Positions 3,815 to 57,232 of a stretch of DNA of 64,000 nucleotides are shown piece by piece. Under the pieces are notes generated by a model. The model saw only the letters and a list, made by a program, of their open reading frames with translations, was not told the origin of the DNA and searched no databases. This DNA is from Anthoceros angustus. Lineage: Eukaryota; Plantae; Anthocerotophyta. A program made the position numbers and the translations under genes. The stretch is taken from assembly GCA_010909165.1 (NCBI GenBank), contig MU008153.1:124001-188000 (forward strand), written 5' to 3'. The first letter of the stretch is position 1, and each line of letters opens with the position of its first letter.

Positions 3815-4245
3815 ATGTCGGGGGCCAATGCTGATACAACGTCAGATAGGTTACAAGATAAGGACAGACTTACCCCAAATAATTACGATGCCTGGAGTTT
3901 CAGGGTGCGCTGCATCCTAGAAGAAAAACTGCTCATGGATATAGTAGATGGCAAAGTACCCAAGAAGATTGCTGGACAGTCCAGGAGTAACAACACCAGG
4001 AGGCACTGCTTGGGATCGATGCGAGTAACAACACCGAGGAGGCACATGCGTGGACTATCCGATCGGGTAACAACACCGGGAGGCCTGATTGAGTGGAACC
4101 TCAAGGATGAATTAGAGTGGGCGTTCAAAGGCGAGGAAGGCACGTACCATACTTGTGTCTTCTCTCACGGAGATGATTCCTCACATAAAAGCTACAGCCT
4201 CAAACGAAGTCTCGGTCACTTTTATCTCGAAACTCGAGCCATCTT
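3815..4245 (+). pseudogene. Copia B gag N-terminus, truncated by the Gypsy LTR
   Basis: RLTPNNYDAWSFRVRCILEEKLLMDIVDG is a Copia gag N-terminal motif. Three GVTTP-like repeats lie at about 3985-4090. The sequence breaks off at 4245. Confidence 0.8.
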
Positions 4246-4959
4246 GATTAATTAGGCTAGCTAATTAATTAACCTAGGTAATCAGGCCGATTAATTAGGC
4301 TAGCTAATTAATTAACCTAGGTAATCGGCCGATTATTAAATAACCAATCCGAATTAGGCGGGCATGAAACGTATGGGTTCGTTTAGGGCTCGGGAGCGAG
4401 GCGTGAAGGGCAAACGATGATGCCGGATGATGACGAACGTGAGGATGGGCAGCTCGGGCATTATTACGCAAGATGGTCGTGAGGTTGCGGCGTGGGGCGG
4501 CATGGCGCCGACGGTATGGAGTGAGACCGCGGCAGCGGCCGAGCAAGTGCGAGATAAGTACCGATGCGGGCTTAGCAGTAGTTGTCGAAGTTCTCAAGTA
4601 GACTGGCGCGCTGCTGCTTGACCTTCCCGTAGCCGGCTAGGGGACATAAGATATGCCGTGATTTCTCGAATCGGAGCAAGTCGTGAGCGTCATGTCGTGT
4701 GTGTGGTCCGAGTGTGTCGTGTTGATGCCGGGCCGAGGACTTACCGCAACTCACCGAACTGGTTTGTTAGGGCGGTGTGCTCAAGATCCGGTGTTTCGAG
4801 TTGGTCGATCCGCCGCGCCCGTAGGTGTTGTGAAACCGAGATTGGCCACGGTGGTTCACCGTTCGCGATTTTGCCCAAACACTGGTTTTGAGTGAACAAG
4901 ACACATTAGCGCTCCTTGCAGCGCGACGATGTTTCTTTCGTATGGTTTTACTTCTGACA
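4245..4959 (+). repeat. 5' LTR of the Gypsy-DNMT element (3' end uncertain, 4949-4959)
   Basis: About 700 bp homologous to 13727-14389. CpG-rich, with an AT-rich palindromic head (taattaggctagctaatta, acctaggt) that is duplicated in this copy. Confidence 0.8.
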
Positions 4960-5267
4960 ACTACTTTCTCGAAACTTGCTGCCATCGGCTTGGTGTGCTG
5001 CAGGAGTTGTTGTGTGCACAAAGATCTACCTGTCCCGATTCATGGGCATCATGGTGTGGACCTAACGTGCTACAGTTTGTGAGCTAAGGGAGTGACAGGA
5101 TACTCACCGGCCGAGTGTCCGTGGAGGGTGGTACACCTATCTCCTCGAGCTCACAGGTGTTCTAGCAAGGAGTCGTGGTCAAGTCGCAGCACAAATTTTT
5201 GTGTCATGCTCTTCCTTTCCTAACCTCCTGTTAATTACCGACTTTGTTACTTTTGCATGGGCTATAT

Positions 5268-7072
5268 ATGTCATCTGATGGGAGCGATGAGGAGCCAGCC
5301 TACCGTTTGAGGAGCAGGACTGTACCACAGCGGCCTTGGGTCCCACAGCGGAGAGCACGACGTCAACGGACTGTGAGGCTTGGTTCACCTGAGTTAGGAC
5401 TGGTTGAGGAGCCGACTGTCTGTCATCCTCCACCTCCTGGCCAGAGTACCACGGGCCGTAGTACTGCTAGTAGTGTCCGGTCTGAAGCGAGGAGTGAGTT
5501 GGTCACCTCTATCGACCATTGTTCAGATCGTGAGTGGAGCTACCGATTCGAGGAGGAAGAGTCTGGAAGTCGATACCATGGAAGGATCCGAGGCTGCTCA
5601 CAAGTCCGAAGTTTTCGGTAGACCGTGGACGCAGACTCTTAGGGACTTCAAACTGTGGTTTTTAACTAGTCGCGTCAGGTTTAAGCGTGGAGCCGCCTAC
5701 ACTCATCGGTACATGTTTGAACAGCTGCCTGGGTATCTAGCGGATGAGGCCCTGGATCTGTTTGAGATTCATGCACCAGAAATGTTGGCAGTAGTAGAGA
5801 AGCCTAACCCTGCCTACGCAGCGGCTCTGCAAGTGGCATACGACAGTTTGATGGCCGCTGATCGCATCAAGCGGGGATTGCGGTGGCACAATTGCGTTCT
5901 CCCCACCACCCACAGGAACATGACTCCACAGGAGATGGCTATCGCTACCATGCCGTTCGATATGTTAGATGTGCCCAATCATGACAACCTCAGAGAAGAC
6001 TTCTTTGCAATTTTGGATAAGGCCTTCCCAACCAAGACCCCGAGAAAATTGCCGAGCTTGCACTTTGCGCAAGAAGGGTGAAATAAAGATGATGGCCTTT
6101 AGGCGATTACAGAAATTGAGGGATGGCACGGGTATGTTGACTGACCAGGAGGCGGCACAGAAGTTCTTGGCTGCCTTGGAAACTGACCCCATGTTTCATT
6201 ATCAGCTCTTTACTACGTTGGTTGACAAGTATGGGGACAACTACACACTGGATCAGGTCTATCGGGAAGCGGAGAAGAAGGAGTTGGCCTTCTCAGCGTA
6301 TGCTTCCCAGCATACCAAGGCTTTCCACCATTACCAGCAAATGTTTTCAGGGAAGGGTAGTTCAGTAACAACGCAGAGTGCTGTCAACAAGGGCAAGGAG
6401 TCCAAGCCCAAGGCCGGAGCGCCATCCACCACACTTTGTAACAGTGTGGCGGTCGAACACCTTTTGCCTCGCATGACACTTGACTCCTTACACTGCGCTC
6501 ATTGCAAGAAACCAGGTCACGTGGAGGCAGTTTGTTTTTCAAAGTATCCGGAGCGGCGACCTTGGAAAACAGGGATAGACTCTAGTGCCGCCACTAAGCC
6601 TACCATCACTATTGAATCGGAGCAACCGGCATGTGGAGTGCCTCAGAGGCCAGGAGGAAATCACATCGAGAAGAGCCAAGTCAAGCGCGACAAGGCTAAG
6701 CAAAAGGCTGCTGCTCAAATGACTGCCCTGGAGACAGCCATGGCTGCACTGACTACCCAGGTCAGCACTTTGGCGGCAAGCTTGAATGCTGCTAAGCCTG
6801 CCAATGCTATGGAACTTGTAACTGCCGGGACATCAGACGATCTTGGTGAAGATTATGGGCCAGTCATGGAGGCTTATGCAACACACAAGGAGCAGTCCAA
6901 GGCTGAACCATTGCATGGCAAAGGTCTAAGCGAGTTGATTCGTCCGGTCGGTACCACACAAACTGGTGGTCACCTCTTAGACGCATCACCGCCACCACAC
7001 GCCGCCAAGGAGCTAGAGCCGCAATGCCCAGTCTTTCCAAAGAACTTCCATCGAGTCCAAAGATACCAGTGA
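5268..7072 (+). CDS. gag: Gypsy Gag with CCHC zinc knuckle (frameshifted across ORFs 5244-5621, 5404-6081, 5969-7072)
   Basis: Helical gag core, then CAHCKKPGHVEAVC zinc knuckle and a coiled segment. Confidence 0.8.
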
Positions 7073-7380
7073 GAGGGTCAGATCATCTACCTAAAGGGGA
7101 TCAAGAGGAGCAAAGGACTGACCAGGTTCCTAGCCAGTATCACAAGCTAGACACACACAAGTCTGAACAGGCTGCTCGATTGCTGACCATGGTGTTAACG
7201 CGCAAGGAGTTGTTGAAGAGGGTGTACACGGCACCCTTGCTCAGCCTACAGGATGTAGGAATTGAAGAGGCTAACTTGGACACCATGCTGCAGTCTCCAC
7301 AGGCTGAGGTACTGTTGGCTGATGATTGCAACAGCCATCATGGTCAGACTGGGCTGGATTCACTTGTTTCCGGCAAGACC

Positions 7381-8700
7381 GTGCCCAATCATGACAACCT
7401 CAGAAGACTTCTTTGCAATTTTGGATAAGGCCTTCCCAACCAAGACCCCGAGAAAATTGCCGAGCTTGCACCTTTTGCGCAAGAAGGGTGAAACAGATGA
7501 TGGCCTTTAGGCGATTACGTAAATTGAGGGATGGCACGGGTATGTTGATCGACGAGGCGGCAAGGTTCTTGCCTTGAAACAACCCATGTTTCATTATCGA
7601 CTCTTTACTACGTTGGTTGACAAGTATGGGGACAACTACACCGGATCAGTCTGGAAGCGGAGAAGAAGGAGTTGGCCTTCTCGGTATGCTTCCCAAAGAT
7701 ACCAAGGCTTTCCACCATTACCAAAGAATGTTTTCGTGAAGGGTAGTTCAAGAATAACGCAGAAAGTGTCGTCAACAAGGGCAAGGAGTCCAAGCCAGGC
7801 CATCACCACACTTTGTAACAGTGTGGCGGTTGAACACCTTTGCCCGCATGTGATTTAGTGTCGACTCCTTAATCGCTCATTGCAAGAAACCAGTCACGTG
7901 GAGGCGCTTTGTTTTTCAAAGTATCCGAGCGACCTTGGAAAACAGGATAGACTCTAGTGCCGCCACTAAGCCTACCATTACTATTGAAGGAGCAACTGGC
8001 ACAGTGGAGTGCCTCGGCAGAGCCACAGGGAGGAAATCACGAAGAGCCAAGTCAAGCGCGACAAGGCTGGCTGCTCAAATGATCGCCTGAGACAGCCATG
8101 GTCGACCGACTACCAGTCAGCACTTTGGCGGCAAGCTTGAATGTGCTAAGCTAAGCCCGCCAATGCTATGGAACTTGTAGCCGGGACATCGACGATCTTG
8201 GTGAAGATTATGGGCCACCATGGAGGCTTATGCAACACACAAGGAGCGGTCAAGGCTGAACCATTGCATGGCAAAGGTCTAAGGCGAGTTGATTCGCCCA
8301 GGCTGATGCAGTTACTACAAAACCCGGGTCACCTCTTAGACGACCGCACATCAAGAAGGAGCTAGAGCCGCAATGCCTGTGTCTTTCCAAAGAACTTCCA
8401 TCGAGTCCAAAGATACCGGAGAGGGTCGATCATCTACCTAAAGGGGATCAAGAGGAGCAAAGGAACGGGTTCCTAGCCGTGAGCTAGACACACACAAGTA
8501 ACAGCCGCTCGATTGCGACCATGGTGTTAACGCGCAAGGAGTTGTTGAAGAGGGTGTACACGGCACCTTGCTCAAATTTACGTGATGTAGGAATTGAAGA
8601 GGCTAACTTGGACACCATGCCGCAGTCTCCACAGTCGATCGCTATCGATGATTGCAATGCCCATCATGGTCGACCGGGCTGGATTCACTTGTTTCCGCAA
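7381..8700 (+). repeat. Noisy tandem re-copy of 5971-7375 (gag 3' half)
   Basis: Collinear with the first copy but full of single-base indels; probably an assembly artefact. Confidence 0.8.
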
Positions 8701-8819
8701 GGCTGTGCACAATTGGCTTGGGAAAGTCGGTCTACCAATCGTGACCCACAAATCGCGCAAGGCCACGTAAGTAACGTGCTTGTGGACAATCGGGCTAGCC
8801 ATGTCCGGTAAATGGATTT

Positions 8820-9080
8820 GCACCCAGGTGTGTTGTTGGACACGGGGAGCAGCCGATGATCATAGGGAAGGTTGCTGAGGCTGCGGCTAGAAAGTGCGTT
8901 GAAGCCTTCCCCATGGAACATTCGACTGGGGCTTGAGCTGTGAAAGGGGAAATTCCAACCAAATAAGATCACTTTGAAGCCCAACACAGATGAGGTGAGC
9001 TTGGCGGTCGTTGTCTAGTCACGGTGCCACCAATTATGACATCCTGTTGGACAGAATTGCTTCCGTGAGTCTCAATTGAC
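8820..9080 (+). CDS. Gypsy aspartic protease (frameshifted)
   Basis: GVLLDTGS at about 8827-8850 and ATNYDILL at about 9025-9050. Confidence 0.7.
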
Positions 9081-9504
9081 AATCGAGAAGGCCTTTTTAG
9101 GCCGATTTGGGGGGGAAGTTGCCTACCTACCTTGGATTTGCATGGGTCACAGCATGAGGCTACTGGTGGAAAGACAGGCCTGTATGGTGCAGATCCAGCC
9201 TTGGGGGGATGGGCCAGTTCCCCTATTACCACCAGATTATCGCGCTCAAGCATGGTTAGATGAGTGTGGAGAGGATGAGGACATCCTCTCACATGCTCAT
9301 GAGGGAGATGTGTTGGGAACACAGCTGTCCTCTCAGGTCTCAGTATCCAGCCATTCTGAGCCTCCCATAGCCAGCAAGGAGCGCATGCAGCAAGCTCAAG
9401 AAACAGTTGCTCGTGTTATGCAAGTGCTGCAGAAAACCTTCATGCACAAATGTGGGAGGGAGCACATGTTTCCCCATTCAACGATGTGATTACTTGGCTA
9501 CCTT

Positions 9505-10395
9505 CATCACGAGGTATTACCTTGGTGGAGGTTGGGGCCTATGTCGGTCTTGAGGCGGTCTTGAGGTGTGGCATCACGGTCTTGAGTACATCTCGTGATG
9601 TTTGTCCAGCTGTTAGGCATATTGCCGCACATCGGTGCACTGCTGCAGCAGTAGCTTCAAAGAATTTTCCAGGTGCGAAGAGCATGTTTGACACTCTCCC
9701 ACGTAATATGATTACATCCGGCAAGCACACGTTCAAGCCCTTGGGCATGTGGATTTCTTGATTGCGAGATAAGTGCAAGGCCTATCCCAAGCCGGAAAGG
9801 AGCGAGGTTGCAAGATAACCGTTCGAGGCTTATTTAGGATCCGTGCAAGTACTGCTGTGGATCAACATCCTCAAGTGGCTTATCTGCTGGAGAACACACC
9901 AGCCCAATTGGATGCTCGGCCACAACTGCGCCAAGACATGGCTGTGATCCAACACATCATTGGACCTCCCTTCACCATGGATGCAGCTCAGGTGGGCAGC
10001 TATGCTCACAGACTCAGGAATTATTGGACCAATTTGGTCCCCTTACCTATCCTGCACTTGGCTTTACAGCAACAGCAGCGGGAGCCCACCCGTCTCCTAC
10101 AGGATGTCCTGGATGACAATCATACTCCCAAGCCTGTTGCAGCCAAGGAGAGAGCCCCTTGGTTTCCTACCAACACACCTGGCCAGCCAAGGAGAACTCG
10201 CCCACGTGGTCACTATCCCGGCTCCTATGCTTATAGGAATAACGGTCTGGTATGCTTTTTAATGAAGATACCAAGGTGTGGGAGGAACCTACAGTGGAGG
10301 AGAGGGAACGGTGATGGGTCTCCACACCCACAAAGACGGCCGCACCCAAGGCTTCTGTGGCTCGAGGTTTGCAGCACTTGGCCGTGCCATGGATG
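9505..10395 (+). CDS. C5 DNA-cytosine methyltransferase domain inside Gypsy Pol (frameshifted)
   Basis: Conserved C5-MTase motifs in order: I-like (GITLVE..G...GLEAVLRCG), II-like (DVCP), IV (DFLIA..C/QGLSQAG, TGC at 9774-9776), VI (YLLENT), VIII (DAAQVGSYAHRLRNYWTNL), IX (PTVEERER.MG), X (RFAALGRAMDV). Confidence 0.87.
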
Positions 10396-10649
10396 TCGGT
10401 GACCGGCCGGGTCACCTTTGCTTGGCTTTCGATGCTCACGGACCTCGAGGCGCGGACCCACCGCTCATACCAAGATTTTTCTTGTCATCCCGATGTCGCT
10501 TCACTTGCCATTCTCGCTTACATCGGTCCTATCACCGACGCAATGGGGTGGAGCACATGTTTCCCAAACTGTTGTTTACCTTGATGGATCTAGGACCGAT
10601 CGCCAACGGCCGCCAAGACTTCACCTACCATGGAAACTTTTGGTTGGAC

Positions 10650-11900
10650 CATGGGTCCTCACCGATTGTGGGCGAGGCACAGATACGGGCTTTGCTTTTA
10701 CAATACTCAGATTGTTTTGCTTTCAAAGATGAAGGATTTGAAGAGGTGCAATGTCATGACCTTGATTAAGCTCAACACCATCGAGCCTATCTACAGCGCA
10801 GAGCAGTTGAGCTGAATGGAAACTGGACGCCGCTGTGGAGTTGTATAAGGTGGGCTAATTAGGCCCTCTAGTTCGACACGCATGCCTCTTCCACCTAAGA
10901 AGGACAATGGCTTTGGACCGAAAACGAATGTGTGGGGACTATCGTCCCATCAATGCGGCAACAGCCTACGGATAGGTATCCTATGCCTACACCGGAGGAG
11001 TTGTTTGATGATTGCGCCTAAGTTCTTTTCTACCGGACTGCGATGTGGCTTCAATCGTGCCGTGGCGAGGAGGACATTCCCAAGATAAGCTTTCATGGAG
11101 CCCACCGTGGAGTGGCTGGTCATGCCTTTTGGGTTCAAGAATGCACCAGTGACTTTCCAAAGAGTCATGGACAAGGTACTGGCAGGGGCGCCTCATCTTT
11201 TGTGTTACATAGATGATGTATTGGTCCATAGTGTGGACTTTGACACTCATCTGATGCATCTGGAGGATTTGTTCTAGAGGCTGCAAAAGGCCCAGCTAAC
11301 ATGTCATCCAGCCAAGTGTGAATTTGCCATGGACACAGTTGCATATCTTGGGCATCGGATTCTGCCAGATGGCATAACACCACATCTTGCTAAGGTGCGG
11401 CCATCCAATGATCCAAGCCCCAACTAATGTGCTCTTAGGGCTTTTTAGGGTTGTGCAATTACTATAGGGTCTATGTTCAGGCCTTTAGCAGCATTGCTAA
11501 GCCCTTGAATGATCTGTTGCGCAAGGAGACAGCCTGGGATTGGACAGAAAGTTGTCAAGCTGCGTTTGAGGGCTTGAAGAGCAAGCTGAGGCAAATGCCA
11601 GTCATGGCCATACCTGATTTTTCCAAGCCTTTTGTCCTCCATACTGGAGCATTTTTGGCTGGGTAGCACAAGTGGATGTCAAGGTCGAGAGGGTCATTGC
11701 CTATGCTTCAAGAAGCAACAGATGAAGCAAATTACTCCAGCTATGAAGGGAGTTGCTTGCACTGTGGGCTATCGCCATTTTCGCCTTATCTGTATGGGCG
11801 AATGTTTACTTGGTATTGCACCATCCTTGAAATGGGCGATGTCTAATACGGCTTAGTGGGAAACTCGCAAGGTGGGCAATGATTCTTGAGGACTATGAGT
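10650..11900 (+). CDS. Gypsy reverse transcriptase and RNase H (frameshifted)
   Basis: CGDYRP, RYPMPTPEELFD, WLVMPFGFKNAPVTFQRVMD, CYIDDVLVHS, CNYYRVYVQAFSSIAKPLNDLLRK, PDFSKPFVLHT. Confidence 0.93.
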
Positions 11901-12099
11901 TTGAGGTGGTCCATCGGCACGGAACCAAGCACGATCGGAATCCTGCCACGCAACCACAGAGTAGCGAGGACAACACGGCTCGCCAGACGGTGACATGGAG
12001 GAAACTCCTAATGCTGCAGCTTTGGTGACCATGCTTTGCGTGGTACAGGTCTGTGCTAACAGCCGTTTTCAGCCACACAAGGATGTGTGGAGTGATGAA

Positions 12100-13300
12100 G
12101 CCACATTGCAGTATGTGAAGACTGGGCAAATGGATGCTAGCTTGGATGCACATCAGCAAGAGAAGGTACAGCAGAGAGCAGCCTGTTATGAGTGGAGGGA
12201 TGGGTACCTGCTGAGGAGGCTGGCCAACGGGGCTGAACGTTTGGTGCCTCCACCACAGGATCGTACAGGGCTTATCCATAGGGTGCATGAAGATCTAGGC
12301 CATTTTGGTGTGAAGCGCACCTCCCGCTTCCATCCACATTTCCACCGGCATGGCATGTTCACTCGGTGCGAGGAGGTGGCTGTGTGTGCTCAATGTGGTC
12401 AAGGCTTCTTTAGCAACCCTCATTCGTAGGCAGTGCTGCCCATCATGGGACTCTTCTTTAGGTGGTCCTGTGACTTGGTGGAGAATTTCCACGACACCAC
12501 GTGGCAATGTTTACATCATGGTCATGATTGAACATTTTGCGAAGTGGGTGGAACTGGTAGCACTTCCGGACAAGACATCACGAAGCACACCAAGCATTTT
12601 GCACAATGTGCTTAGCGATTTGGGGCGATCTTGAGTGTCTCGACGTGGAGTCAATTCGAGGTGAGTTTCAGGATCTACTGGATGGTGCACTTATTGACCA
12701 CCGGCGCACAAGCCGTGATCACCCACAAGCAGACGGGTTGGCTGAGAGGATGGTGCAGACCATCAAACAGGCGTTGAGAAATCTATGCCTCACCAAGCCC
12801 AAGACAGATTGGGACTTGGCTTTGCCATACATTGCTATGGGCTACAGGATGAGCAAGCATGCATCACTGGCCAACTTCTCACCTTACTTCCTTTTGTTTG
12901 GAAGAGAGCCAGTACCACCTGTGGCCATTGCTCGCCAGATGCAAGAAGTGTTGAGTTTGGATGACCACCGCATGGGCCAAGGCTATTGGGGAACGTGCCT
13001 TATTAGGCGGTGATGCCAATGGCTATGGCCAATCTCAAGATAGCTCAAGATCGTGATACACTCGGTATGCTCATACCGGAGTGGGAGTTTCCACCCTAAG
13101 GTCGGAAATTTCAGCGGGGACTATGTCTATCTACGGCGGCAAACACAGGATACTTTGGAGCCTAGCACTAGCAGACATGTGTTACGGTTGCGAGAGGTGC
13201 GTAGGAATGGAGTGCTGTTGCTGGAAGGGTCAGATGGGAGGGTCACCACAGACCACATGAAGAACTGCGCCCCTTGCCATCTGCCCAACTTGGACCCCAC
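12100..13300 (+). CDS. Gypsy integrase (frameshifted)
   Basis: HEDLGHFGVKRT zinc-finger part, MIEHFAKWVELVALP, HPQADGLAERMVQTIKQAL, FSPYFLLFGREP, GDYVYLRR. Confidence 0.92.
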
Positions 13301-13340
13301 GCTGGTCACGACAAATTGGGTCCCTCCGGTTGACTATCCA

Positions 13341-13465
13341 TGTCGGTGTGCGAGAATTGATGATCCAGCACTCATGTTGTTGTGTGATGGTGCAATGGCG
13401 GCTACCACCTATTTTGTCTTGACCACCGATCGAGGTGCCGAGAATTCGTGGTATTGCCCCTTTGC
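13341..13465 (+). CDS. PHD finger (C4HC3) at the integrase C-terminus
   Basis: Allowing about 3 single-base indels it reads C..C..IDDPALMLLCDGCNGGYHLFCL......P..SWYCP.C. Confidence 0.82.
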
Positions 13466-13726
13466 CGAGCTAGGGACACCGATAATGTGATCGGTGACTC
13501 CTTGGATTTTCCTTTGGCATCCGATGAGCTTGCTCAGCTTTGGTGGCTTGTAGCACCACCAGGGGGATGAGGATTTACCGTGATTCCGTTCATCCTCGCT
13601 CATTTTCTCACAACACGTTCATAGCGACCTACCGTAGAGTGTGAGGTTAGGACTTTCGTCACAGACAATTTTGGTTGCCTAATGTCAAGGGCACTTTTGG
13701 CTAACACTGTTTCAAGACGATACCGC

Positions 13727-14389
13727 TGTTACGCTGATTAATTAGGTTAGCTAATTAATTAACCTAGGTAATTAGGCTGATTACTAGATAACCAGTCCGA
13801 ATTAGGCAGGCATGAAACGTGTGGGTTTGTTTAGGGCTCGGGAGCGAGGCGTGAAGGGCAAACATATGATGCTGGATGATGGCGAACGTGAGTGACTGGG
13901 CAGCTCGGGCATTATTACGCAAGATGGTCGTGAGGTTGCGGCGTGGGCGCATGGCGCCGACGGTATGGAGTGAGACCGCGGCACCAGCAAGTGCGCAGAT
14001 AAGTACCGATGCGGGGCTTAGCAGTAGTTGTCGAAGTTCTCAAGTAGCGACTTTTGCGGCGCTTGGACCTTCCGTGTGGCTGGGGACATAAGATATCTTT
14101 GTGTGATTTCTCGATGTCGGAGCAAGTCGTGAGCGTCATGTCGTGTGTGTGTGCAGGTGTGTCGTGTTGATCTTTGGTGAGGACTTCTGCAACTCACCGA
14201 ATCTGGTTTGTTAGGCGGTGTGCTGAAGATCTGCTGGTGTTGAGTTGGTCGATCTGGCGGGGCCGCCCGTGGGTGTTGTGAAGCAGATTGCGTCACGGTG
14301 GTTCACTGCTCGCGATTTTGCCCAAACACTGGTTTTGAGTGAACAAGACACATTAGCGCTCCTTGCACGATGTTTCTTCGTATGGTTTT
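13727..14389 (+). repeat. 3' LTR copy of the Gypsy-DNMT element
   Basis: Starts TGTTACGC and is homologous to the 5' LTR up to ...TATGGTTTT. It is separated from the PPT by about 160 bp that duplicate 14390-14545. Confidence 0.78.
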
Positions 14390-17300
14390 GATGAGGATTT
14401 ACCAGATTCCGTTCATCCTCGCTCATTTTCTCACAACACGTTCATAGCGACCTACTCGAGAGTGTGAGGTTAGGACTTTCGTTCGCGTACAATTTTGGTT
14501 GCCTAATGTCAAGGGCACTTTTGGCTAACACTGTTTCAGCACGACAAACCTACGAGTCAAAAGACATGATGACTGAGGTTGCTGCGACGCTGCACTTCCA
14601 AAATCTCTGCATGAAGGAGAGCGACTCTGTTGAGAGTCATGTTGCTAGGTTTAGGGCTGCTAGAGCCAAACTAGCATCTTGCGGAGTCATCCTTTCTGAG
14701 TCTAGAGCTGCAGTACAGTTGCTAGCCTCACTTCCCCCCAGTTATGAGTAGTTTAGTTCCAACAAGCAAGCAACAGCAACAGTAGTCCCTGCCACTGCCA
14801 CTCAACCTGCATCATCAAATCTCACTGTTCAGAAAGTTGTTGGAGCCCTCCTACAGGCTGAAGCCAACAGAAAACATATGCAAAAGGGAGCATCCTCTAG
14901 TTCTTACAAGCGGTGATACCGCCTTTATTCCGGCAGAGGTCGAGGTAGAGGCAGAGGGGCGTGGACGTGGTGGCGAGGGGCTTTGGAAGAGGACGTGGTC
15001 ACCTCACAATTCAAATTCCTCTTCATCTACCAAGCCCGGTAACCTAATTATTGTAATAAACCAGACAATTTTGGATTAAAGACTGCAGGAAGAGAATTAG
15101 AGATGAAGCAAAGAAAAGGTAGGCACACATCGAAACAAATCTGAGCTAGCACACAGCCTCGGTGGCATGTCTTACCTCATCGAAGAAAGGATGTCAGAAG
15201 TGGTTTCTAGACAGTGGGGCCTCGAATCACATGTGCTCAAACAGAAGTCATTTATTACCTATGAGCCGTCTTCCGTGTGTCATCAAACAGCGGTTGTTTT
15301 AGGGGATGACTCCACCATACCCATTAGGGGTTCTGGAACCATACAAATCACTTTGAAGGATGGGAGCTCCTTACTCTTAGAGAATTCCCTGCATGTTCCA
15401 ATCGCTAAAAACCTGGTGAGTACAATGGCACTAGGAAAGACGAATCAATACAGGATTACCTTTGAAGGTACTGAATGTTACATATCGAGACTGTCAACCC
15501 CAACTGTCCCTATTGCGCAAGGAACACCACTATTTGACCTTTACCTCATGGATTTCATATCGACATTCCTCCGATTATGCCTGCCACAAGCATCGCAGCA
15601 AGTTAGCTACGAGTGCCTTTAAGTGGCACTGTAGGTTGGGGCATCCTAATATAAAAGCAATGCGAAGATTGCTGCGAGAGAAAATGGTAACTGGATTTGG
15701 TGAATCAGAATTACCTGACCTTGACCTGTGTGTGTGCATGGCAAACAATTTAAGTCACACTTCGGGAGTGGAAAACCTCGCAAGGCAACAGAACTGTTAG
15801 ATTTGGTCCACACAGATATCTGTGGGCCAATGTCAGTGAACTCATGGGGAGGAGCAAGATATTTTGTGGTGTTTGAAGATGACCAATCACATTTTACAGT
15901 CACTGAACTTCTTCACCAGAAAAGTCAGGTCTTCGACAGCTTCAAACGATATCTTGCATATGCAGAAAGGCAGACTGGGAAGAAGCTCAAATGCATCCGC
16001 TCCGATAATGGAAAGGAATATCTATCTACTGCCCGTGAGTTCGGGAGAAAGGAATTACACGTCAACTTACCATTCCATATCATTCAGATATGAATGGACG
16101 TGCAGAATGGAGACATAGGACTATCCAAGACGCTAGGGCACTTGCTTGTGGAGGTTACCAATTGCTTCGGGCGCACAAGTGGCAACGTATCTCCAAAACA
16201 GATAGTTGTCTCTCTTCAAGGTGCACTTCAAGCCCTGGACTAGTAGTAAGCCCGATCTTTCTCACCTTGAGTTTTTGGTAGTACTTTATGCACATATCCC
16301 GCATAAGCCACGTAAGTTTTCTTTTAAATCTAAAAGACACATCTTCATAGGCTACACTCCTGGAATACACGGTTATAAGTTGTTTGAACCACAAACCCGT
16401 CGTGTCATTCATGCTCGTACTGTAGCCTTCGATGAGCGTTCTGTTCTTGAGCCTCCTACACACTCCTTTAACGATTTTGTAGATCCTGAGTCTGTAGAAT
16501 TGGCTCAACCCACAGAAATCGACGTTACTGACCCCATAGTGGATGATAGTGATTCTGACGTAGTCGAATTCCCTGGTCAAGATCCTTCTTACCTTGAACT
16601 CGACACTGGAGGCCTGCTCCACACAGCCCACTTGTTCCCCCGCTGTCCAGCCTCCTAATCCACCAAGACCAGATCCACCACCCTCAGATGATGATGATGA
16701 CCCTCAGTCTGATGCTGCTCCAGTTGTAGTGCCCCCTGACCTTCCTGACGATTGGTTTGTTGACGATCCGGTTGAGTATGTGATGCCGGTTCCTCAGACA
16801 GAACCTCCTAGAAGGTCCACAAGGGTTCGCAGACCTCCTGCACAGTGGCGTGAACCCCCCTATCGGAGTGAAGATTTTCGTAAGGTTCCTCGGCCACATG
16901 GGTCTGCTGTCGATGAAGTTGTTGTGGACATGGTGAACGTTATCACCAATCCTGGATATGAGCCGTCCACCTACCACGAGGTCACCATCGGATCAGAAGC
17001 CAAACATTGGAAAGCAGCTATAAAATGTGAGTATGACTCATTGATCCAGAACAATACCTGGGAGTTATGCCGCCCGCCTGAGGGGAGGAAGATTGTTACA
17101 TCCAAGTGGGTGTTTAAACTCAAATATAAAGCAGACGGGAGCATTGCCAGGTATAAAGCTCGTCTTGTCGCTCGCGGTTTTTCTCAAGTCCCAGGCTTGG
17201 ACTATCATGATACCTTCTCACCAGTTGTTAAGTCTCAGTCCCTCAGAGTCTTGTTCTCCATGTCTGCATTCTTTGGTCTCCATATTCATCAAATGGACGT

Positions 17301-18654
17301 CAAGACTGCCTTCCTGCATGGTAAGTTAGAAGAGGAAATATTCATGCAAAGAACCGAGGGTTTTGAGTTTGTAGGGAAAGAAGACTGGGTTTGTAAGTTA
17401 CTTAAGACCATTTATGGTCTGAAGCAGAGTCCACGTGCCTGGTACGAGTGTATAGATGAGTTTCTCCTTGGCTGGGTTTCCTCAAGAGTTCTGCAGACAC
17501 CAATGTGTACTTCCTGCAAGAGCAAATAGGTTATGTTATTTTAGCTCTGTATGTAGATGATTGCATTCTGCTAGGAACTAACTTAGAGGGAATTTCAGAG
17601 TCAAGGGTCCGCTTGTCGTCATGGTTTTTCTCAAGTCCTGTGCTTGACTATCATGATACCTTCTCACGCCTGTTAAGTCTCCTCGTAGTCTTGTTCTCCA
17701 TGTCCGCATTCTTTGGTCTCCATATTCATCAAATGGACGCCAAGACCGCCTTCCCGCATGGTAAGTTAGAAGAGGAAATATTCATGCAAAGAACCGAGGG
17801 TTTTGAGTTTGTAGGGAAAGAAGACTGGTTTGTAAGTTACTTAAGACCATTTATGGTCCGGGCGAGTCCACGTGCACGAGTGTATAGATGAGTTTCTCCT
17901 TGGCTGGGTTTCCTCAAGAGTTCTGCAGACACCAATGTGTACTTCTGCAAGAGCAAATAGGTTATGTTATTTTAGCTCGTATGTAGATGATTGCATTCGC
18001 TAGGAACTAACTTAGAGGGAATTTCAGAGTCAAGGGTCCGCTTGTCGTCATGGTTTTTCTCAAGTCCTGTGCTTGACTATCATGATACCTTCTCACCGGT
18101 TGTCAAGTCTCGGTCCCTCGTAGTCTTGTTCTCCATGTCCGCATTCTTTGGTCTCCATATTCATCAAATGGACGCCAAGACCGCCTTCCCGCATGGTAAG
18201 TTAGAAGAGGAAATATTCATGCAAAGAACCGAGGGTTTTGAGTTTGTAGGGAAAGAAGACTGGTTTGTAAGTTACTTAAGACCATTTATGGTCCGGGCGA
18301 GTCCACGTGCACGAGTGTATAGATGAGTTTCTCCTTGGGCTGGGTTTCCTCAAGAGTTCTGCAGACACCAATGTGTACTTCCTGCAAGAGCAAATAGGTT
18401 ATGTTATTTTAGCTCTGTATGTAGATGATTGCATTCTGCTAGGAACTAACTTAGAGGGAATTTCCAGAGTCAAGGGTCTGCTGTCAGGTCGTTTTGACAT
18501 GGTTGATGTTGGAGAGCTGTCGTATTGTCTTGGCACTCAACTCCAACGTGATCCTGCTAGCGAGACATTGGTTATTCATCAAGAGAAGTATATTTATGAT
18601 ATGCTGTTCAAATACAAGTTGCTGGACGCTAAGCCTGCTCTTACATCGTTGGAA
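14390..18654 (+). mobile_element. Ty1/Copia element C gag-pol (gag, protease, integrase, RT), frameshifted
   Basis: Gag FQNLCMKESDSVESH...QLLASLPPSYE; FKWHCRLGHPN; LDLVHTDICGPM; KCIRSDNGKEY; RT 16594-17529 with YKARLVARGFSQVPGLDY and HQMDVKTAFLHG; LYVDD. Its gag covers the same domain segment as the gag at 3815-4245, so it is a different element. Confidence 0.9.
17165..18475 (+). repeat. Three tandem ~430-bp copies of an RT segment
   Basis: ARGFSQ...LEGISRV segment repeats at about 17165, 17605 and 18035; the later copies are indel-rich. Confidence 0.85.
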
Positions 18655-42098: not shown

Positions 42099-43798
42099 AT
42101 GGCAGGCATGACCGATGCGGAGGCCATGTTCTTCAAAGAGGCCAAATTGCCAGCGCGGCTGGCAGCAGCGGCATACTCTTCCTCCGATGACTTCAGCAAG
42201 ACAGTCCCGATCCTGGACAGCAGCGGAAAGACCAAGGAGATCTGCACGCACCTCCTGAGGCCGCAATCGACTCCGAATCGAGCCGAGCTCGAGGGCTTGG
42301 CAAATTGGATGCTCGACATCCGAGTGCACATCGCCATCATCCCCGTGGAGCTACCGGATGCATCGCTGGCGTGGGACCTGGCCCTCGTCTTCCGCGGCAC
42401 GCAGCCCTACAGCGTCACCAACTGGGTCCTCGATTTCACCTTCGACCAGGAGCCGGTGGCCAAGTACATCCTGCAGGAGCCGGAGAGGACGGACATCCGG
42501 CAGCACCAGATGCTGGTCCACACCGGCTTCCACCAGGCGTTCCAGGGCGTCATCCCCGAACCCGACCCTCACGAGGACCACACCATCGAGTACATCGCAG
42601 AAGTCATCCAGAAGTACATCGAGAACCATGGGAGCGCCAAGCAAACGTTTGCCAAGACCCGGGACGTGAAGGATGGCTTCCAACCCGAGGTGATCGCAGC
42701 CAGCCCCCTGGAACTGTCGGTTCTGGTTTCTTCAGTTTTGATCATCTGCGGATTTGTGATGCCAGCCAGCTACAGGTGCATTTGTGATGTCATCCTTGCT
42801 GGTCCTTCTTGGGGCGATGCTAATCTTGCCTGTTGTATCGTTCCAAATTGATCAGTTGTGCCCGGAAGCCTTCCGCGGAGAGTTGGCCAGCACGATTCAG
42901 GCCCAGCCGCGGCCCAGGCGCATCCTGTCCATCGGGCATAGCCTGGGCGGCGCCCTGGCCACCCTGGGCGCCGCCTGGTGCAAGACAACGCTGTGCAACG
43001 ACAAGCGTTTCCGCGACTGCCCCGTGCAGTGCATCACGCTCGGGTGTCCCAGAGTCGGGAATCGATCGTTCGCCATGGCCTGGGATGAGAAGCTGAGATC
43101 GAGAAACGGGATGAACAAGGCGGGGGAGGGAAAGTCGTACCGGATCGTGAACGCGCTGGACTGGCTCCCAGCGTGCCGCTCTCCTTGAAGTTCCAGCACG
43201 TCGGAATGCCCGTGTACCTGCACCGGGAGGTGAAAACTGGGACGTGAAGGTTTGGCCGTGCGTGGGGCAGGAGCGGCCCAAGCTCAACACGGGCTCCCCG
43301 ATCGACCACGTGCAGTGGCACTACACGTCCGCCATGGTGGTGGCGGAGGCGACGGCGGCGTCGGCCACGGCGGACGAGAGGAAATCATCCCTGCTCACCC
43401 GACAATCCTGGTGGTTTGTGGCTTTCGCGCAGCAGCTGAAGCCGGGCTTCATGTGGGAAGTGTTGAAGCGCACGGTGGTGCTGGATCTGCCGTTGCATGC
43501 ACATTTCGCGGTGTTGGTCTTGTCGTGGGCCATAGCCGTGTCCTCCTTCGTTGCGGGGCTGGCAGTTTGCTGGCTCGCGCTCTTCCCTCTCATCATCTTG
43601 CTCCTTCCTGCGTTCACGGCGTCCTTCCTTGTGGACTGTTTGGTTGCGGCCGTGTTGTGGCCTTTCAAAGTGTGCTTTGGATCCAGCGGCAAGCTGCTCC
43701 CGCCCACTCCCCATTACAAGTTCGGGAACATAACCCTCGCGCTTTTGTCCCTGGTTGTCATGGTGGTGACCTATGTGTCGGCTTGGCTTGGACTGTAG
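42099..43798 (+). CDS. Class 3 lipase with hydrophobic C-terminal segments (probable intron about 42690-42857; one apparent frameshift near 43168)
   Basis: ALVFRGT...NW.LDF, VHTGFHQAF, nucleophile elbow IGHSLGGALATL, ITLGCPRVGN, RIVNALDWLP, FQHVG, DH..WHY. Confidence 0.88.
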
Positions 43799-49977: not shown

Positions 49978-52432
49978 ATGGACATCGACTCCGAGGAGTG
50001 TTTTGTGCGGAAGCAAGCACATTTTGTGTCACAGGTTCGAGAATCATGGTGCTGTATTTTCTTGTCGGAAGTGATGGTTTTGTTGTCAGATTTGTAGCGT
50101 CTGCGTGATGTTTCTGTTTGATTCGGAGCAGGACGAGAAGTATCTTCTGCGGGATCAGAAATACAAGGGGCAGCAGTACAGCCAGCTCTACTTCATCCGC
50201 CTGCACAAGCTTCGGGAACAGATCAAAGCTGTGGCTAGAATGAAGTGGCCAGGTCTTTCAGGTGTGTACTTTCGGGCAGGGTTTAGGGTCCCCGCTGTCT
50301 ATGCTGAGGATTTTGTGGTCAGCTTTGAGAAGCTTGCTGTTTGGTGGTCCCGGCAGTGTGTAACATTCTAGGTCTTGAGGAGGGCAAGCGATGTGTGGTT
50401 GTGGGCACTTTGTACAAGCACATGAAGCTGAAACCATCGATTCTAGCGGAGTATTCCAAGGAGGTGGGTTGTGGTTTTGTGGCTTCATATGGATTTTAGT
50501 TGCGTTTGTAGCTTTGGCTGAGAAGGCTGGGGTTTTGCACCTTACAGCGGTCAAATGTGCCTCTGGCTACTCCTGACAAGTTCACTCATCCTAGTGATCA
50601 TCTTATTCTGGAAGATGAGAGTGGGCGAGTCACGCTCTCAGGAGTTGGATCCCAGGCACAGTATTATGTGACAGGTAATTGTAAACGGTCAGTACTTCGA
50701 GTCCTTTACCCATCATCCGAGCGTTGATCTGCTTGGTTGCAGTGACCTTTGCTGGCTTGGTTCCGCACAGGTGTGGTGGTGGCTCTCTGTGGTCATGAGG
50801 ATAGGAATGGTTTGTATTTTGTAGAGGAGATACTGGAGGCAGGATTGCCCCCGCAGCTTCCTATACAAGCACCTGCTGGTAAGAGTTGTGAAGAACACGT
50901 TTTGGACAGTTCAGCCATTCAAATATCCAAAGCTCTGCAGTCTGTGTGTTGAAGAGCTTGGGGTGATTCACGTCAATCACTGTGGATGATGTGGAAGGTG
51001 CGTTTTGCAGAGGACAAGTTTGTCGCACTGGTATCTGGGTTGAAGGTTGGAGTCAATGGGTCCAATCCACTGCTCCTGCAACTCCTTGTGGATCATTTGA
51101 CTGGATATCTTGGTGACCCACAGGTACTTGGTGCTTATTTCTCGTTATGCTTGTCCAGAAAAGTTTCTTGGTTTGGTAGCACTTATATGATGTAAACTGC
51201 AGGAAATAGGCTTGAGTGCTCGAATAGTGCGGGTTGTCATTGCTGGCAATTCTGTTGACCTCCCACACATGGTCTTACATGGGCAGGTATGGAGCTCTGC
51301 CCAGAGTTTGGAGTTCCTAGCAAAGTTGAGGTTCTAACTCTGTGTTCCCTATCTAGCCTGTAACCCCGAAGGAACAAGGGAAGCTGACTGAACCGATCAA
51401 GGAGCTCGACCTAGCTTTGACACAGGTACATCAAATGTTGGTTGCTTTTTATATCCACCTCAGCTTGTGCAAAAGCTAGTAACAAGAGACTATTCAGCCT
51501 GTCTAGATGGATCCTAGCAAAAGTTTTCTACGTTCATGCACGAAACAGGACACCTTTTATTATTTTGTGTCTGATCAGTGAAATTGTGCTATAGATAGCA
51601 GCAGCGATGCCTCTAGATATTATGCCAGGAGCTGATGATCCTGCCAATTTCTCCCTACCCCAGCAGGTGAGCCACGCTTCATTTGACTGCCAGTCCAGGC
51701 TAGCAGCAGAAGTGATATGAATTGATTTGAGTTGTTGGTCATCAGCCTCTCCATAGGTGCTTGCTGCCCGGAGCTGCAGCTTACAGCACTTTCTACTCCG
51801 CTACGAATCCACATAACTTTGAGCTCGATAGAGTATGTTTCCTTGGAACTTCTGGTCAGAACATCAGTGACCTAGCTAAGTTCTCTGAAGCCGAAGATGA
51901 GCTCGACTTGATGGAGAAAACTCTGAAATGGCGACACCTTGCTCCAACTGCCCCAGACACGCTGGGTAGTTTTCTTGCTCTTCTCTCTCCCTGCCCAACA
52001 GCAAGAGCAGCATCTTTAATTCTCTGTCGTTTTGCAGGATGCTACCCCTTCACAACCGATGATCCTTTCATCATCACAGCATGCCCTCATGTCTACTTCT
52101 GTGGCAACCAGAAAAAGTTTGCAACCCGGCTAGTGAAAGGTGTGGTGGCTTACACCATCCCTATCCATTCAACCTCCACCTCAAGAACAGAAGGAACTCA
52201 CGTCGATTGTCTCTGCCCTCCAGGTCCAGCTGGACAGCACGTGAGGATCATCTGCATTCCCCGGTTCAGTGAGACAGGTTGTGCTGTAATGGTAAGCATC
52301 CTTCCTGCCCTGCTATACTTGAGTGGAAAGAACTGCAATCCAGCTCAGTCCCTTGTCCTTGTCTCCGTGCAGGTGAATATCAGAACACTGGACTGCCATG
52401 TTATCACACTCTCCACAGCATCTCTAGAATGA
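49978..52432 (+). CDS. POLD2: DNA polymerase delta small (B) subunit, multi-exon
   Basis: QQYSQLYFIRL; VGTLYKHMKLKPSIL; LILEDESGRV; FVALVSGL; RVVIAGNS; DIMPGADDPANFSLPQQ; FLGTSGQN; WRHLAPTAPDTL; CYPFTTDDPFII..CPHVYFCGNQ. Confidence 0.96.
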
Positions 52433-54928: not shown

Positions 54929-57232
54929 TCAGAGCATGGCATGGAATAGGTCTACTCCACAGCGGTGGCAGAGGAAGCGGAGAGGGATGGAGTCGGCGTC
55001 GGAGATGCCTCCACATCTGGTATGCTGCCAGACCTCGCAGACATCGCATGCTATCATGCGCTCGCCATCATCGTCCTTGGTACCACAAGGGCAGTCCACG
55101 ATCCAACTGTCGTTGCCGCCTTCATAGCGCCACTCGCTGCACAGCTCAATGCCACCGCCCTGTACGATGACATGGGACCCGGATTCAATGGCTCCGAACA
55201 GCAGGTCCTCGTCGTCTCCTTCCAAGTCGGGGATGGACTCCACCACAAAGTTGCGCATGATCTCATAAGTCTCGCGGTATGCCCGTTGGGCCTCCTGCTT
55301 CAAGTCGCCCACAGTGGCGTGAGGGGGGAGCACCACTAGCTCGGCTGGCGGGCTGGGCCGGTTGCGCTTGGCGTCCTCGTCCTTGAGCACCACAGTGCAC
55401 ATAACTCGCAGCATCTCATCATCGTCCATGCCCCACTCATTGTTGGCACACTTGCGGCTGATCTCCCCCTTGTAGTCCTTGATGAACTGCTTCGTGTCCA
55501 GGATTATCCTTGTAGCAGTTGGGATCGCTGTCAGAACGCTCTTAATGCCCCGCCTTGCTGGCTTGTAGCTCTCCAACACATGCTTATATAAATACACGAT
55601 GTCCCGGAGCACCTCTGCCCGGCCAACCTCGCACACAGTCTCGGACTGGCTGTTCCGCAGGTCGCGGCTCACAGCTGGGTTGGTGGCACTCGCCGTGTTC
55701 ACGTCCTCCAAGCTGTACTCCAGAACCTTGGTGATGGGATTCACAGCTCGCCGCACCACGTGAGAGCCCACAACCCGATTTCCCAAGGACTTGAGCACAA
55801 AGTCCAGCAATCCGGTGTCCCCTATGTAGACCCGGGCTGCATCCCTCACATCCTGCCGAGGCATCCACTTCTTCTCGCAGCTCTTCAAGGCTTCCACAAT
55901 CACCTGCGTGGCTAAGTCCAGCCTTTTCACAGACCAACGGCAGGGCATGTCCACAGCAGCAGGTTGAGGGCTGTTCGCTGTGCTGCATTTCTTGTCCGAG
56001 ATGTACTCTTTGGAAGCTGCAGTCTTTCCGACATTCTTCGAAGCTGTTGGATGCAGTGGAAGCCGAGCTTTGAGCTCTGTCATAAACCTCAACAGATCAC
56101 CAACTGTTTGCAGAGTGTTCCCGCTAACTCGCTGGTACATTGTCACTATGGCCAGCACGTCCTGGTCTACACCATCGAAATGCTGCAGCAGTACAGTTAA
56201 AGGCATTCCCCTAATTGCCTCAATTGCCTTCATGTACATCTGAGCAGTAATTCCAAAGCTTCCATGCCCGAACTTGTAGCCCCACCTCCCGTACCAGGAT
56301 TCTCCATATGCTACAGAATGGATCAGGCGGAATTCCAGTGACCTCTTTTTGGCAACATCCTCAACGCTCACCTTCCTGCAGATTTCGAATTCAAGCAACT
56401 CAGAGTTAGAGCTTTGAAAGTTTGGCAGTCACTAGTGAAGACTCACAGCCCCATGGAACAAAACTGCCTTAATTCAGGTGCTTACCTTGCTCTAAGCATG
56501 GCACAAACCCGGTCCCACAGATCCATGATCTCCCTTCCTGAAGCGAATTTGGACCCTTTCTCTCTGCCGTTTATCCGCAAAAGATGGCCATACCCATTGC
56601 AATGGAGAACTCCGTGTAGCAAGTGACTTTGCAAGTCCAAAATGCTGCCAATAACAGCATCTTCACCACAGGAGGGGCAAGTGAACATGTTTGTCGGAAT
56701 CGGATCGCTGCATCCAGGGCACACCTTTCCCCCAACCAGCCCGACCAGTCCCATCGGCCGCTCCTCAATCTCTGGCGCTGGAATGATGAAGTGATACCGC
56801 ATGTTCGACACGGGATGATGGCTCCACCCTGGATACTCGTGCGTTAGCGATGAACATACAGGGATGAAGTGCCACTGAATCCACAGAAGTACGCTATCAA
56901 AAGCAAACCGATTTCAATTTGCTGAATTTGAGCTGTGAAATCATACCTATGCAGCGGCAGTGGTCGCAGTGTGGATGCAACGAGTCGCGCATTCCTTCTT
57001 CAATAATTAGCAGTGAGATTCTTGAGCCGCTGGAGTCCTCCGAGAGCCCTACCGACCACGCCGGCATGCCTTCGATGTTGTACAGCTCTGGCTCTGCGCA
57101 GTCCTCCAGGAATCTCCGTATGTTATCTCTGAATGGCGCATAGTAGTCGGCAGGGCAGCCTGGATCTCCGAAGGTGTGAAAGCCAAACAGCCTGTCCCCT
57201 TTCCTCCGCTTCCTGATGTCACAGGTTTGCAA
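54929..57232 (-). CDS. PHD-finger protein, MMD1/MS1 family, copy 1 (exons about 57232-56935, 56830-56485, 56380-54929; start uncertain)
   Basis: FRDNIRRFL, HCDHCRCIGWSHHPV, HLLHGVLHCNGYGHLLRING, WYGRWGYKF, GDTGLLDFVLKSL, C-terminal PHD VDCPCGTKDDDGERMIACDVCEVWQHTRC. Confidence 0.93.

Follow-up and report, generated by a model that had tools for sequence, protein, structure and literature searches.

The window analysed here is a 64,000-nucleotide stretch of contig MU008153.1 (positions 124,001 to 188,000, forward strand; assembly GCA_010909165.1, deposited as Anthoceros angustus). At 4245-14544 of the window lies a Ty3/Gypsy retrotransposon with the remnant of a DNA methyltransferase (DNMT) inside its Pol region. 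The parts of the element follow one another on the + strand in the order gag-protease (PR)-DNMT-reverse transcriptase (RT)-RNase H (RH)-integrase (INT)-PHD. Very probably, a member of the streptophyte Gypsy-DNMT3 lineage inserted here long ago and is no longer functional; its host is a land plant, most likely a hornwort.

Two long terminal repeat (LTR)-like sequences bound the coding region, A1 on the 5' side (4245-4949) and A2 on the 3' side (13735-14389), both on the + strand and both found by blastn self-comparison, a repeat search and end alignment. They are 92.5% identical over aligned columns, with a Kimura two-parameter distance (K2P) of 0.080 and 45 gap columns. A1 starts with TGATTAATTAGG, and a 43-bp tandem duplication is found at its start (4245-4293 and 4288-4336). 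The same self-comparisons revealed a shorter repeat on the + strand, one copy of which lies just upstream of A2 (B1, 13566-13720) and the other abuts the A2 end (B2, 14390-14544); B1 and B2 are 94% identical (K2P 0.061). The repeat layout is A-coding-B-A-B. An LTR that is really A+B or B+A was ruled out, as no B copy stands beside A1. We also observed a 20-nt similarity (TCTCGAAACT.G..GCCATC; score 23) just before (4225-4243) and just after (4967-4986) A1, which may be due to chance or may be tied to priming or template switching.

The gag region is a tandem duplicate (5969-8713, + strand; copies 5971-7389 and 7381-8713), with 85% identity in self-blastn, gaps included. Its open reading frame (ORF) at 5969-7072 contains the CCHC-like motif HCAHCKKPGH, and 6068-6880 is matched by the gag-PR ORF of metagenome locus L004 (tblastn, E 1.5e-20). 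The second gag copy is interrupted by stops. The K2P between the two copies is 0.065, similar to the divergence of the LTR pair, so the gag duplication is about as old as the insertion.

Translation places the protease motif LLDTG at 8833-8847, in a decayed region of roughly 8800-9090, and the DNMT remnant follows at 9504-10397. RT occupies 10914-11400 in several frames (YIDD at about 11205; PF00078, 46.2 bits on 11095-11274), and a broken RH lies at 11442-11983 (PF17919, 37.9 bits on 11451-11663); both were also detected by pieces of a pol hidden Markov model (HMM) and by tblastn, in the case of RT with Klebsormidium nitens and Closterium pol. The broken INT at 12001-13063 comprises an H2C2 zinc-binding part and a DDE core, with 22.3 bits to PF17921 (below the cut-off), a weak match to rve_3, and tblastn matches to residues 1177-1567 of the K. 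nitens protein P0411 and to others. A decayed PHD-finger-like tail was found 3' of the integrase at 13323-13469, by tblastn with the PHD of P0012 (E 0.001) and by C-terminal colinearity with PHD-bearing polyproteins; it had no Pfam match. All of these parts are on the + strand. The sequence-only reading had placed a protease and an RT on either side of the DNMT. The RT is borne out by PF00078, but the protease is recognized from its motif and position only, and the protease regions of relatives, used as tblastn queries against the window, gave no protease match.

The DNMT domain was recognized with a family HMM, with phmmer and by motif alignment. Six strings of C5 cytosine methyltransferase (C5-MTase) motifs (I, IV, VI, VIII, IX and X) had been reported in canonical order on the pol strand, and all six are present where that reading had put them, on the + strand, in three reading frames. 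Against the family profile, an HMM built from 30 intact relatives, the piece 9773-10399 (frame 2) scored 138.6 bits at positions 104-267, which cover the rest of motif IV to motif VIII and the target-recognition region. The piece 9360-9758 (frame 0) scored 18.1 bits at positions 3-51 (motif I), 10243-10311 (frame 1) scored 13.9 bits at positions 268-289 (start of motif IX), and LGRAMD (frame 0, positions 307-318) matched weakly; the four sets of profile positions are hit in the same order along the DNA. When 9773-10399 was used as a phmmer query on 1.84 billion representative proteins, 455 of them matched at E<=1e-3, of which 199 also passed E<=1e-10; the best E was 8e-31. A chance resemblance of the motifs was ruled out by these relatives and the family-profile scores. 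The domain is intronless, and self-blastn shows one copy of it in the window.

We compared the domain with known methyltransferase classes by means of the relatives' profile, not the window copy alone. Against PDB sequences, the profile matched DNMT3A (1.3e-18), DNMT3C (7e-17) and DNMT3B (1.4e-16), followed by DRM (1.5e-11), M.HaeIII/M.HhaI (1e-6) and DNMT2 (6e-4), and DNMT1 was not among the matches at E<=0.01. The match to DNMT3A runs in three colinear segments over motifs I, IV-VIII and IX-X. The mammalian DNMT3A/3B catalytic domain (PDB 6w89, 5yx2, 6u8p and others) is the best solved match of the profile and has in common with the family the signatures (P/E)C(Q/N)DLS, ENV, AHR.R.(F/Y)W.NL and LGR...(D/S). 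DNMT3A/3B are encoded by the host and also have PWWP and ADD domains, whereas the present domain lies inside a retrotransposon Pol. As judged from sequence, the domain at 9504-10397 is real and is a C5-MTase of the DNMT3 type.

In this copy, motif I, the S-adenosylmethionine-binding motif, is damaged: it reads EV--GAYVGLE, where the relatives have E(P/L)FGGxCAGLE, with two residues gone and FGG lost, in agreement with its earlier description as degenerate. The reading frame changes near 9700-9707, and a TAA stop at 9770-9772 stands where the relatives have the Trp of G-W-(P/E)-C-Q. The window reads A-R-stop-V-Q-G-L-S against A-G-W-(P/E)-C-Q-(D/G)-(L/F)-S in the relatives, and an in-frame catalytic Cys is absent. 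The TGC at 9774-9776 that had been proposed as the Cys codon does exist, but it comes just after the TAA and is out of frame with the following Gln codon. Further along, five residues are missing after motif IV, Arg replaces the Thr of the invariant PT pair, the frame changes near 10243, and a TGA at 10312-10314 accompanies a frame change at 10311. Altogether, the frame changes at least three times within the domain, and two stops lie in frame. Three of the replaced residues (G and W preceding the catalytic Cys, and T in PT) stand at positions that are invariant or nearly so in 30/30 aligned relatives.

The damage extends beyond the DNMT. Alignment to the K. nitens and Closterium polyproteins revealed 10 or more additional stops or frame changes in RT, RH and INT. 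The sequence-only reading had left it open whether the frameshifts were sequencing errors or decay. To us, the breaks look like the ordinary decay of an old insertion and not a handful of sequencing errors, because invariant residues are replaced, deletions are in frame, breaks occur throughout RT, RH and INT, and the LTRs have a K2P of 0.08. This copy encodes no enzyme, and its DNMT has decayed along with the rest of the element.

To place the element, we considered the order of its domains and its pol backbone. Among the 150 best relatives of the DNMT, almost all long proteins are RT-RH-DNMT-INT, usually with a C-terminal PHD, whereas in the window the DNMT (9504-10397) precedes the RT (from 10914). 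The DNMT-before-RT order was also found in K. nitens KFL_009030040 (P0411), in many proteins of Closterium sp. NIES-53/54/68, in the metagenome proteins P0400, P0409 and P0410, and in contig L002. In KFL_009030040, Pfam assigns PF00145 to residues 312-369, RVT_1 to 770-930, RNase H to 974-1103 and integrase to 1235-1401, and the window is colinear with it across DNMT, RT, RH and INT. In L002, L004 and Closterium P0033/P0395, the DNMT is immediately preceded by PR, with PF13650/PF13975 in relatives, and some relatives have a continuous ORF spanning the DNMT into RT. Since this order recurs in K. nitens, in Closterium and in numerous metagenome copies, in part within continuous ORFs, the evidence supports the view that the DNMT is an integral part of the Gypsy pol upstream of RT, and the earlier claim of a C5-MTase within a Gypsy Pol is upheld, with the DNMT3 type as its class.

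An RT-RH-INT tree was built with the window read through with X at its breaks, by a quick search with Shimodaira-Hasegawa-like approximate likelihood ratio test (SH-aLRT) supports only and no bootstrap. It split the window, K. nitens, Closterium (P0392) and P0400 from the RT-RH-DNMT-INT family at 99 SH-aLRT, and the position of the DNMT in pol tracks this backbone tree. In the DNMT-only tree, Closterium and K. nitens each formed a clade, and a chlorophyte-type group appeared with weak support (92 SH-aLRT, drawn open). A search of the Closterium DNMT against a protein atlas returned only leads scoring <0.9.

Three groups of Gypsy elements can be compared with the window directly. KnitGypsy-Dnmt3 of K. 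nitens, an LTR Gypsy element, encodes a domain related to Dnmt3 within its Pol ORF (de Mendoza et al. 2018, PMC5890265), and the legend to Fig. 4c of that paper writes its DIRS-like repeats as A-coding region-B-A-B. The window element resembles it in its intronless DNMT3-like domain, in the order DNMT-RT-RH-INT, in falling on the same side of the 99 SH-aLRT split and, as far as that legend goes, in the A-coding-B-A-B layout. We filed it with the KnitGypsy-Dnmt3 kind because domain order, pol tree and repeat layout match. It differs in having a land-plant host instead of a charophyte one, in a DNMT identity of about 34%, in a decayed PHD-like tail (none was detected in the partial K. nitens protein) and in being dead. 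In K. nitens, the key residues are reported to be conserved and the ratio of nonsynonymous to synonymous substitution rates (Ka/Ks) to be <0.2 (PMC5890265); such purifying selection with conserved key residues does not hold for the window copy.

The polyproteins of Closterium (Zygnematophyceae) NIES-53/54/68 (P0392, P0033, P0058) have the same gag-PR-DNMT-RT-RH-INT order and belong to the same pol clade. In some of them, a zf-CCHC gag and an aspartyl protease precede the DNMT, and in NIES-54 the locus L001 shows colinearity with the window over the stretch from DNMT to INT. In contrast to the window, Closterium forms a separate, well-supported DNMT clade (32-36% DNMT identity to the window) with no PHD detected and some copies intact.

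The chlorophyte-type Gypsy elements, represented by Haematococcus lacustris QJQ45_005505/6 and hundreds of metagenome proteins, belong to the same DNMT3-like family (38-43% identity to the window), and their RT, RH and INT are related to the window's at 35-48%. They have a C-terminal PHD. Unlike in the window, their DNMT lies after RNase H and before the integrase, and their pol backbone stands apart at 99 SH-aLRT. This RT-RNaseH-DNMT-integrase-PHD arrangement was seen in a very large Gypsy family (P0025, P0012, P0014, P0330, P0332 and about 160 others) whose only named members are from Haematococcus lacustris, and our literature search found no description of it. DNMTs are also encoded by SymbioDIRS-Dnmt3 and SymbioLINE-Dnmt of Symbiodinium, which we compared by description only; these are retrotransposons of the tyrosine-recombinase DIRS and LINE classes, and their acquisition is considered independent (PMC5890265).

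Metagenomes were scanned in two ways. A single window piece as query found no relative, while an alignment query found 80 loci (L003-L082) in a few related JGI samples (Ga0209611, Ga0116226-31 and Ga0209208; also L083), on eukaryotic contigs of up to 192 kb with a GC content of about 41%. RT lies downstream of the DNMT in 64 of the 80 loci and upstream in none (0/80). A PHD stands 3' of the integrase in 34/80, and most copies are decayed. Intact PHDs occur at this post-integrase place in metagenome copies and in the chlorophyte family, and none was detected in the Closterium or the partial K. nitens proteins. Sample 3300027860, one of these metagenomes, also has a contig with an embryophyte-type MS1-like gene. 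A second land plant, perhaps a moss, is the probable source of these loci, with the element and the plant gene on separate contigs. The JGI sample numbers may be those of peat-moss metagenomes.

The host was identified from genes on the same contig, namely two tandem MS1/MMD1-like PHD genes and a fragment of DNA polymerase epsilon subunit B. The two MS1/MMD1-like genes (54929-56398 and 59545-61050, - strand; PF25565 and PHD) each have an exon of about 490-500 codons and are 87% identical to each other. The polymerase exon lies at 51761-52432 on the + strand (PF04042, 75.7 bits). The protein of a 501-residue MS1-like ORF shares 78-79% identity with its counterparts in two liverworts, Riccia and Calypogeia, and in the lycophyte Diphasiastrum, against 42-49% with those of the streptophyte algae Mesotaenium, Spirogloea and Mesostigma. 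In the MS1-like tree, both window copies fall inside the embryophytes, in a 99-supported clade with two Logan proteins that excludes liverworts, lycophytes, ferns and seed plants. These placements support a land-plant, hornwort-like host, as the sequence-only reading had supposed of a land plant. A tandem MS1-like pair was also seen on a Logan contig of run SRR33208241 (L084), with up to 92% protein identity, which indicates that a close relative has already been sequenced.

Several observations weigh against our interpretation. When the stop-free pieces 9360-9758, 9773-10399 and 10278-10766 were searched against Pfam, no family at all was returned at E<=1, PF00145 included. The relatives pass its gathering score (24-40 bits against a cut-off of 22), among them P0151 (39.8 bits), P0001 (38.1), L007 (37.8), P0003 (34.3), P0025 (33.7) and P0411 (33.5). 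The Pfam check proposed earlier was thus failed by the copy's own pieces and passed through its relatives, so that the C5-MTase membership of this copy is transitive. A phmmer search of 9773-10399 against PDB sequences found no solved DNMT, only chance matches to chloramphenicol acetyltransferase (E about 0.6). The protease of this copy consists of the LLDTG motif and its position, with no profile match, and a search for a target-site duplication, with the 3' boundary set either behind A2 or behind B2, found none. The DNMT tree joins the window to neither the K. nitens nor the Closterium clade with support; its sole near neighbour there is the metagenome fragment P0151 (46-50% identity), without strong support. 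The hornwort placement comes from one gene tree, and the decay was judged from the assembled sequence alone.

Some of these observations are what one would cite for a different origin, in which the element is not of a resident streptophyte lineage but arrived by recent horizontal transfer from a green alga, or reflects algal contamination or a chimeric assembly. The DNMT piece of the window shows a slightly higher similarity to metagenome proteins of the chlorophyte type (40-43%) than to those of Closterium (36%), and the DNMT tree leaves it unplaced next to a metagenome fragment. On the other side, plant genes and other plant-type transposable elements flank the element within one contig, its LTR K2P of 0.08 marks it as old, the RT-RH-INT tree sets its pol with streptophyte elements (99 SH-aLRT), and a second, probable land-plant source has the same architecture. 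Contamination is unlikely because the element and the plant genes share one contig, and we consider this group of explanations improbable as a whole. Another view would take the DNMT stretch as part of a host DNMT3 or DRM gene, brought into this single element through nested insertion or recombination and not typical of the family. Capture of host sequence by retrotransposons does occur, and the window shows only one copy; yet the domain has the same position and orientation in K. nitens, in three Closterium strains and in 64/80 metagenome loci, with some continuous DNMT-RT ORFs, its position tracks the pol backbone tree, and it is intronless and colinear with the transposon-borne DNMTs that are its closest relatives. 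We therefore give a captured host fragment very little credence.

It might also be argued that the copy is intact and potentially active, its breaks being errors of sequencing or assembly. The two frame changes read at base level (in motif IV and at 10311) are of one base each, and much of the domain still reads well, with 138.6 bits over 164 profile positions. Besides frame changes, however, there are two stops and in-frame losses of two and five residues, and the (near-)invariant G and W before the catalytic Cys and T of PT are replaced. RT, RH and INT add their 10 or more stops and frame changes, gag is duplicated and broken, and the two LTRs show a 7.5% difference in addition to 45 gap columns. 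An intact copy is thus highly improbable, and an old, decayed insertion of the streptophyte Gypsy-DNMT3 lineage remains our preferred interpretation.

What the enzyme does can be considered only for intact family members. In these, the DNMT would be released from Pol or would act within it, and may methylate the newly made cDNA of the element or its new insertion; the C-terminal PHD finger possibly adds chromatin targeting. The idea of a Pol-embedded de novo methyltransferase acting on new cDNA or a new insertion is that of de Mendoza et al. (PMC5890265). What the sequence itself shows is the homology, the order of domains, the layout of repeats, the decay and the identity of the host; the role of intact members is likely, with any activity and its target inferred. 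The sequence-only reading had suggested that the element in the window could methylate its own cDNA or insertion sites, which this dead copy cannot do. It had also cited de novo CG methylation by dinoflagellate and charophyte elements. In yeast, such methylation was obtained with SymbioDIRS-Dnmt3 only; KnitGypsy-Dnmt3 gave none, a result that the authors call inconclusive (PMC5890265), and the statement holds for the dinoflagellate element but goes beyond the literature for the charophyte one.

In the literature, we found Gypsy-DNMT3 described only for K. nitens, and nothing on land plants, hornworts or Closterium; as coverage was incomplete, this is provisional. A 2026 preprint cites the type as 'streptophytes (Gypsy-DNMT3)', and later usage is loose. 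The element is of a known kind, and what is provisionally new is its host range in land plants. A transposon-borne de novo DNA methyltransferase inverts the usual view of methylation as a host weapon against transposons. As a land plant shares this architecture together with the pol backbone and the layout of the repeats, the host range of such elements spans the water-to-land transition, and tractable bryophytes are thereby offered for asking what the enzyme does. The present copy is a fossil, of interest for the family it represents and for the contrast that this family forms with the much larger chlorophyte one, in which the DNMT sits elsewhere in pol. We wondered whether land plants (hornworts and probably a second bryophyte) have kept a Gypsy lineage with its own DNMT3-type methyltransferase and PHD reader since before their split from streptophyte algae, with some copies intact and expressed. 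We regard this as a tentative possibility, on the doubtful side; if true, a transposon-borne enzyme would contribute to or manipulate embryophyte cytosine methylation.

Elsewhere in the window, a weak match to a class-3 lipase at 42099-42851 (+ strand) marks a further host gene fragment. Ty1/Copia remnants lie on both sides of the Gypsy element. Downstream, one extends over 14560-17530 on the + strand, with a gag-like ORF from about 14560, whose start B2 abuts, and RVT_2 at 16594-17529. Upstream, a SH3_retrovirus match at 2119-2964 on the - strand belongs to the other.

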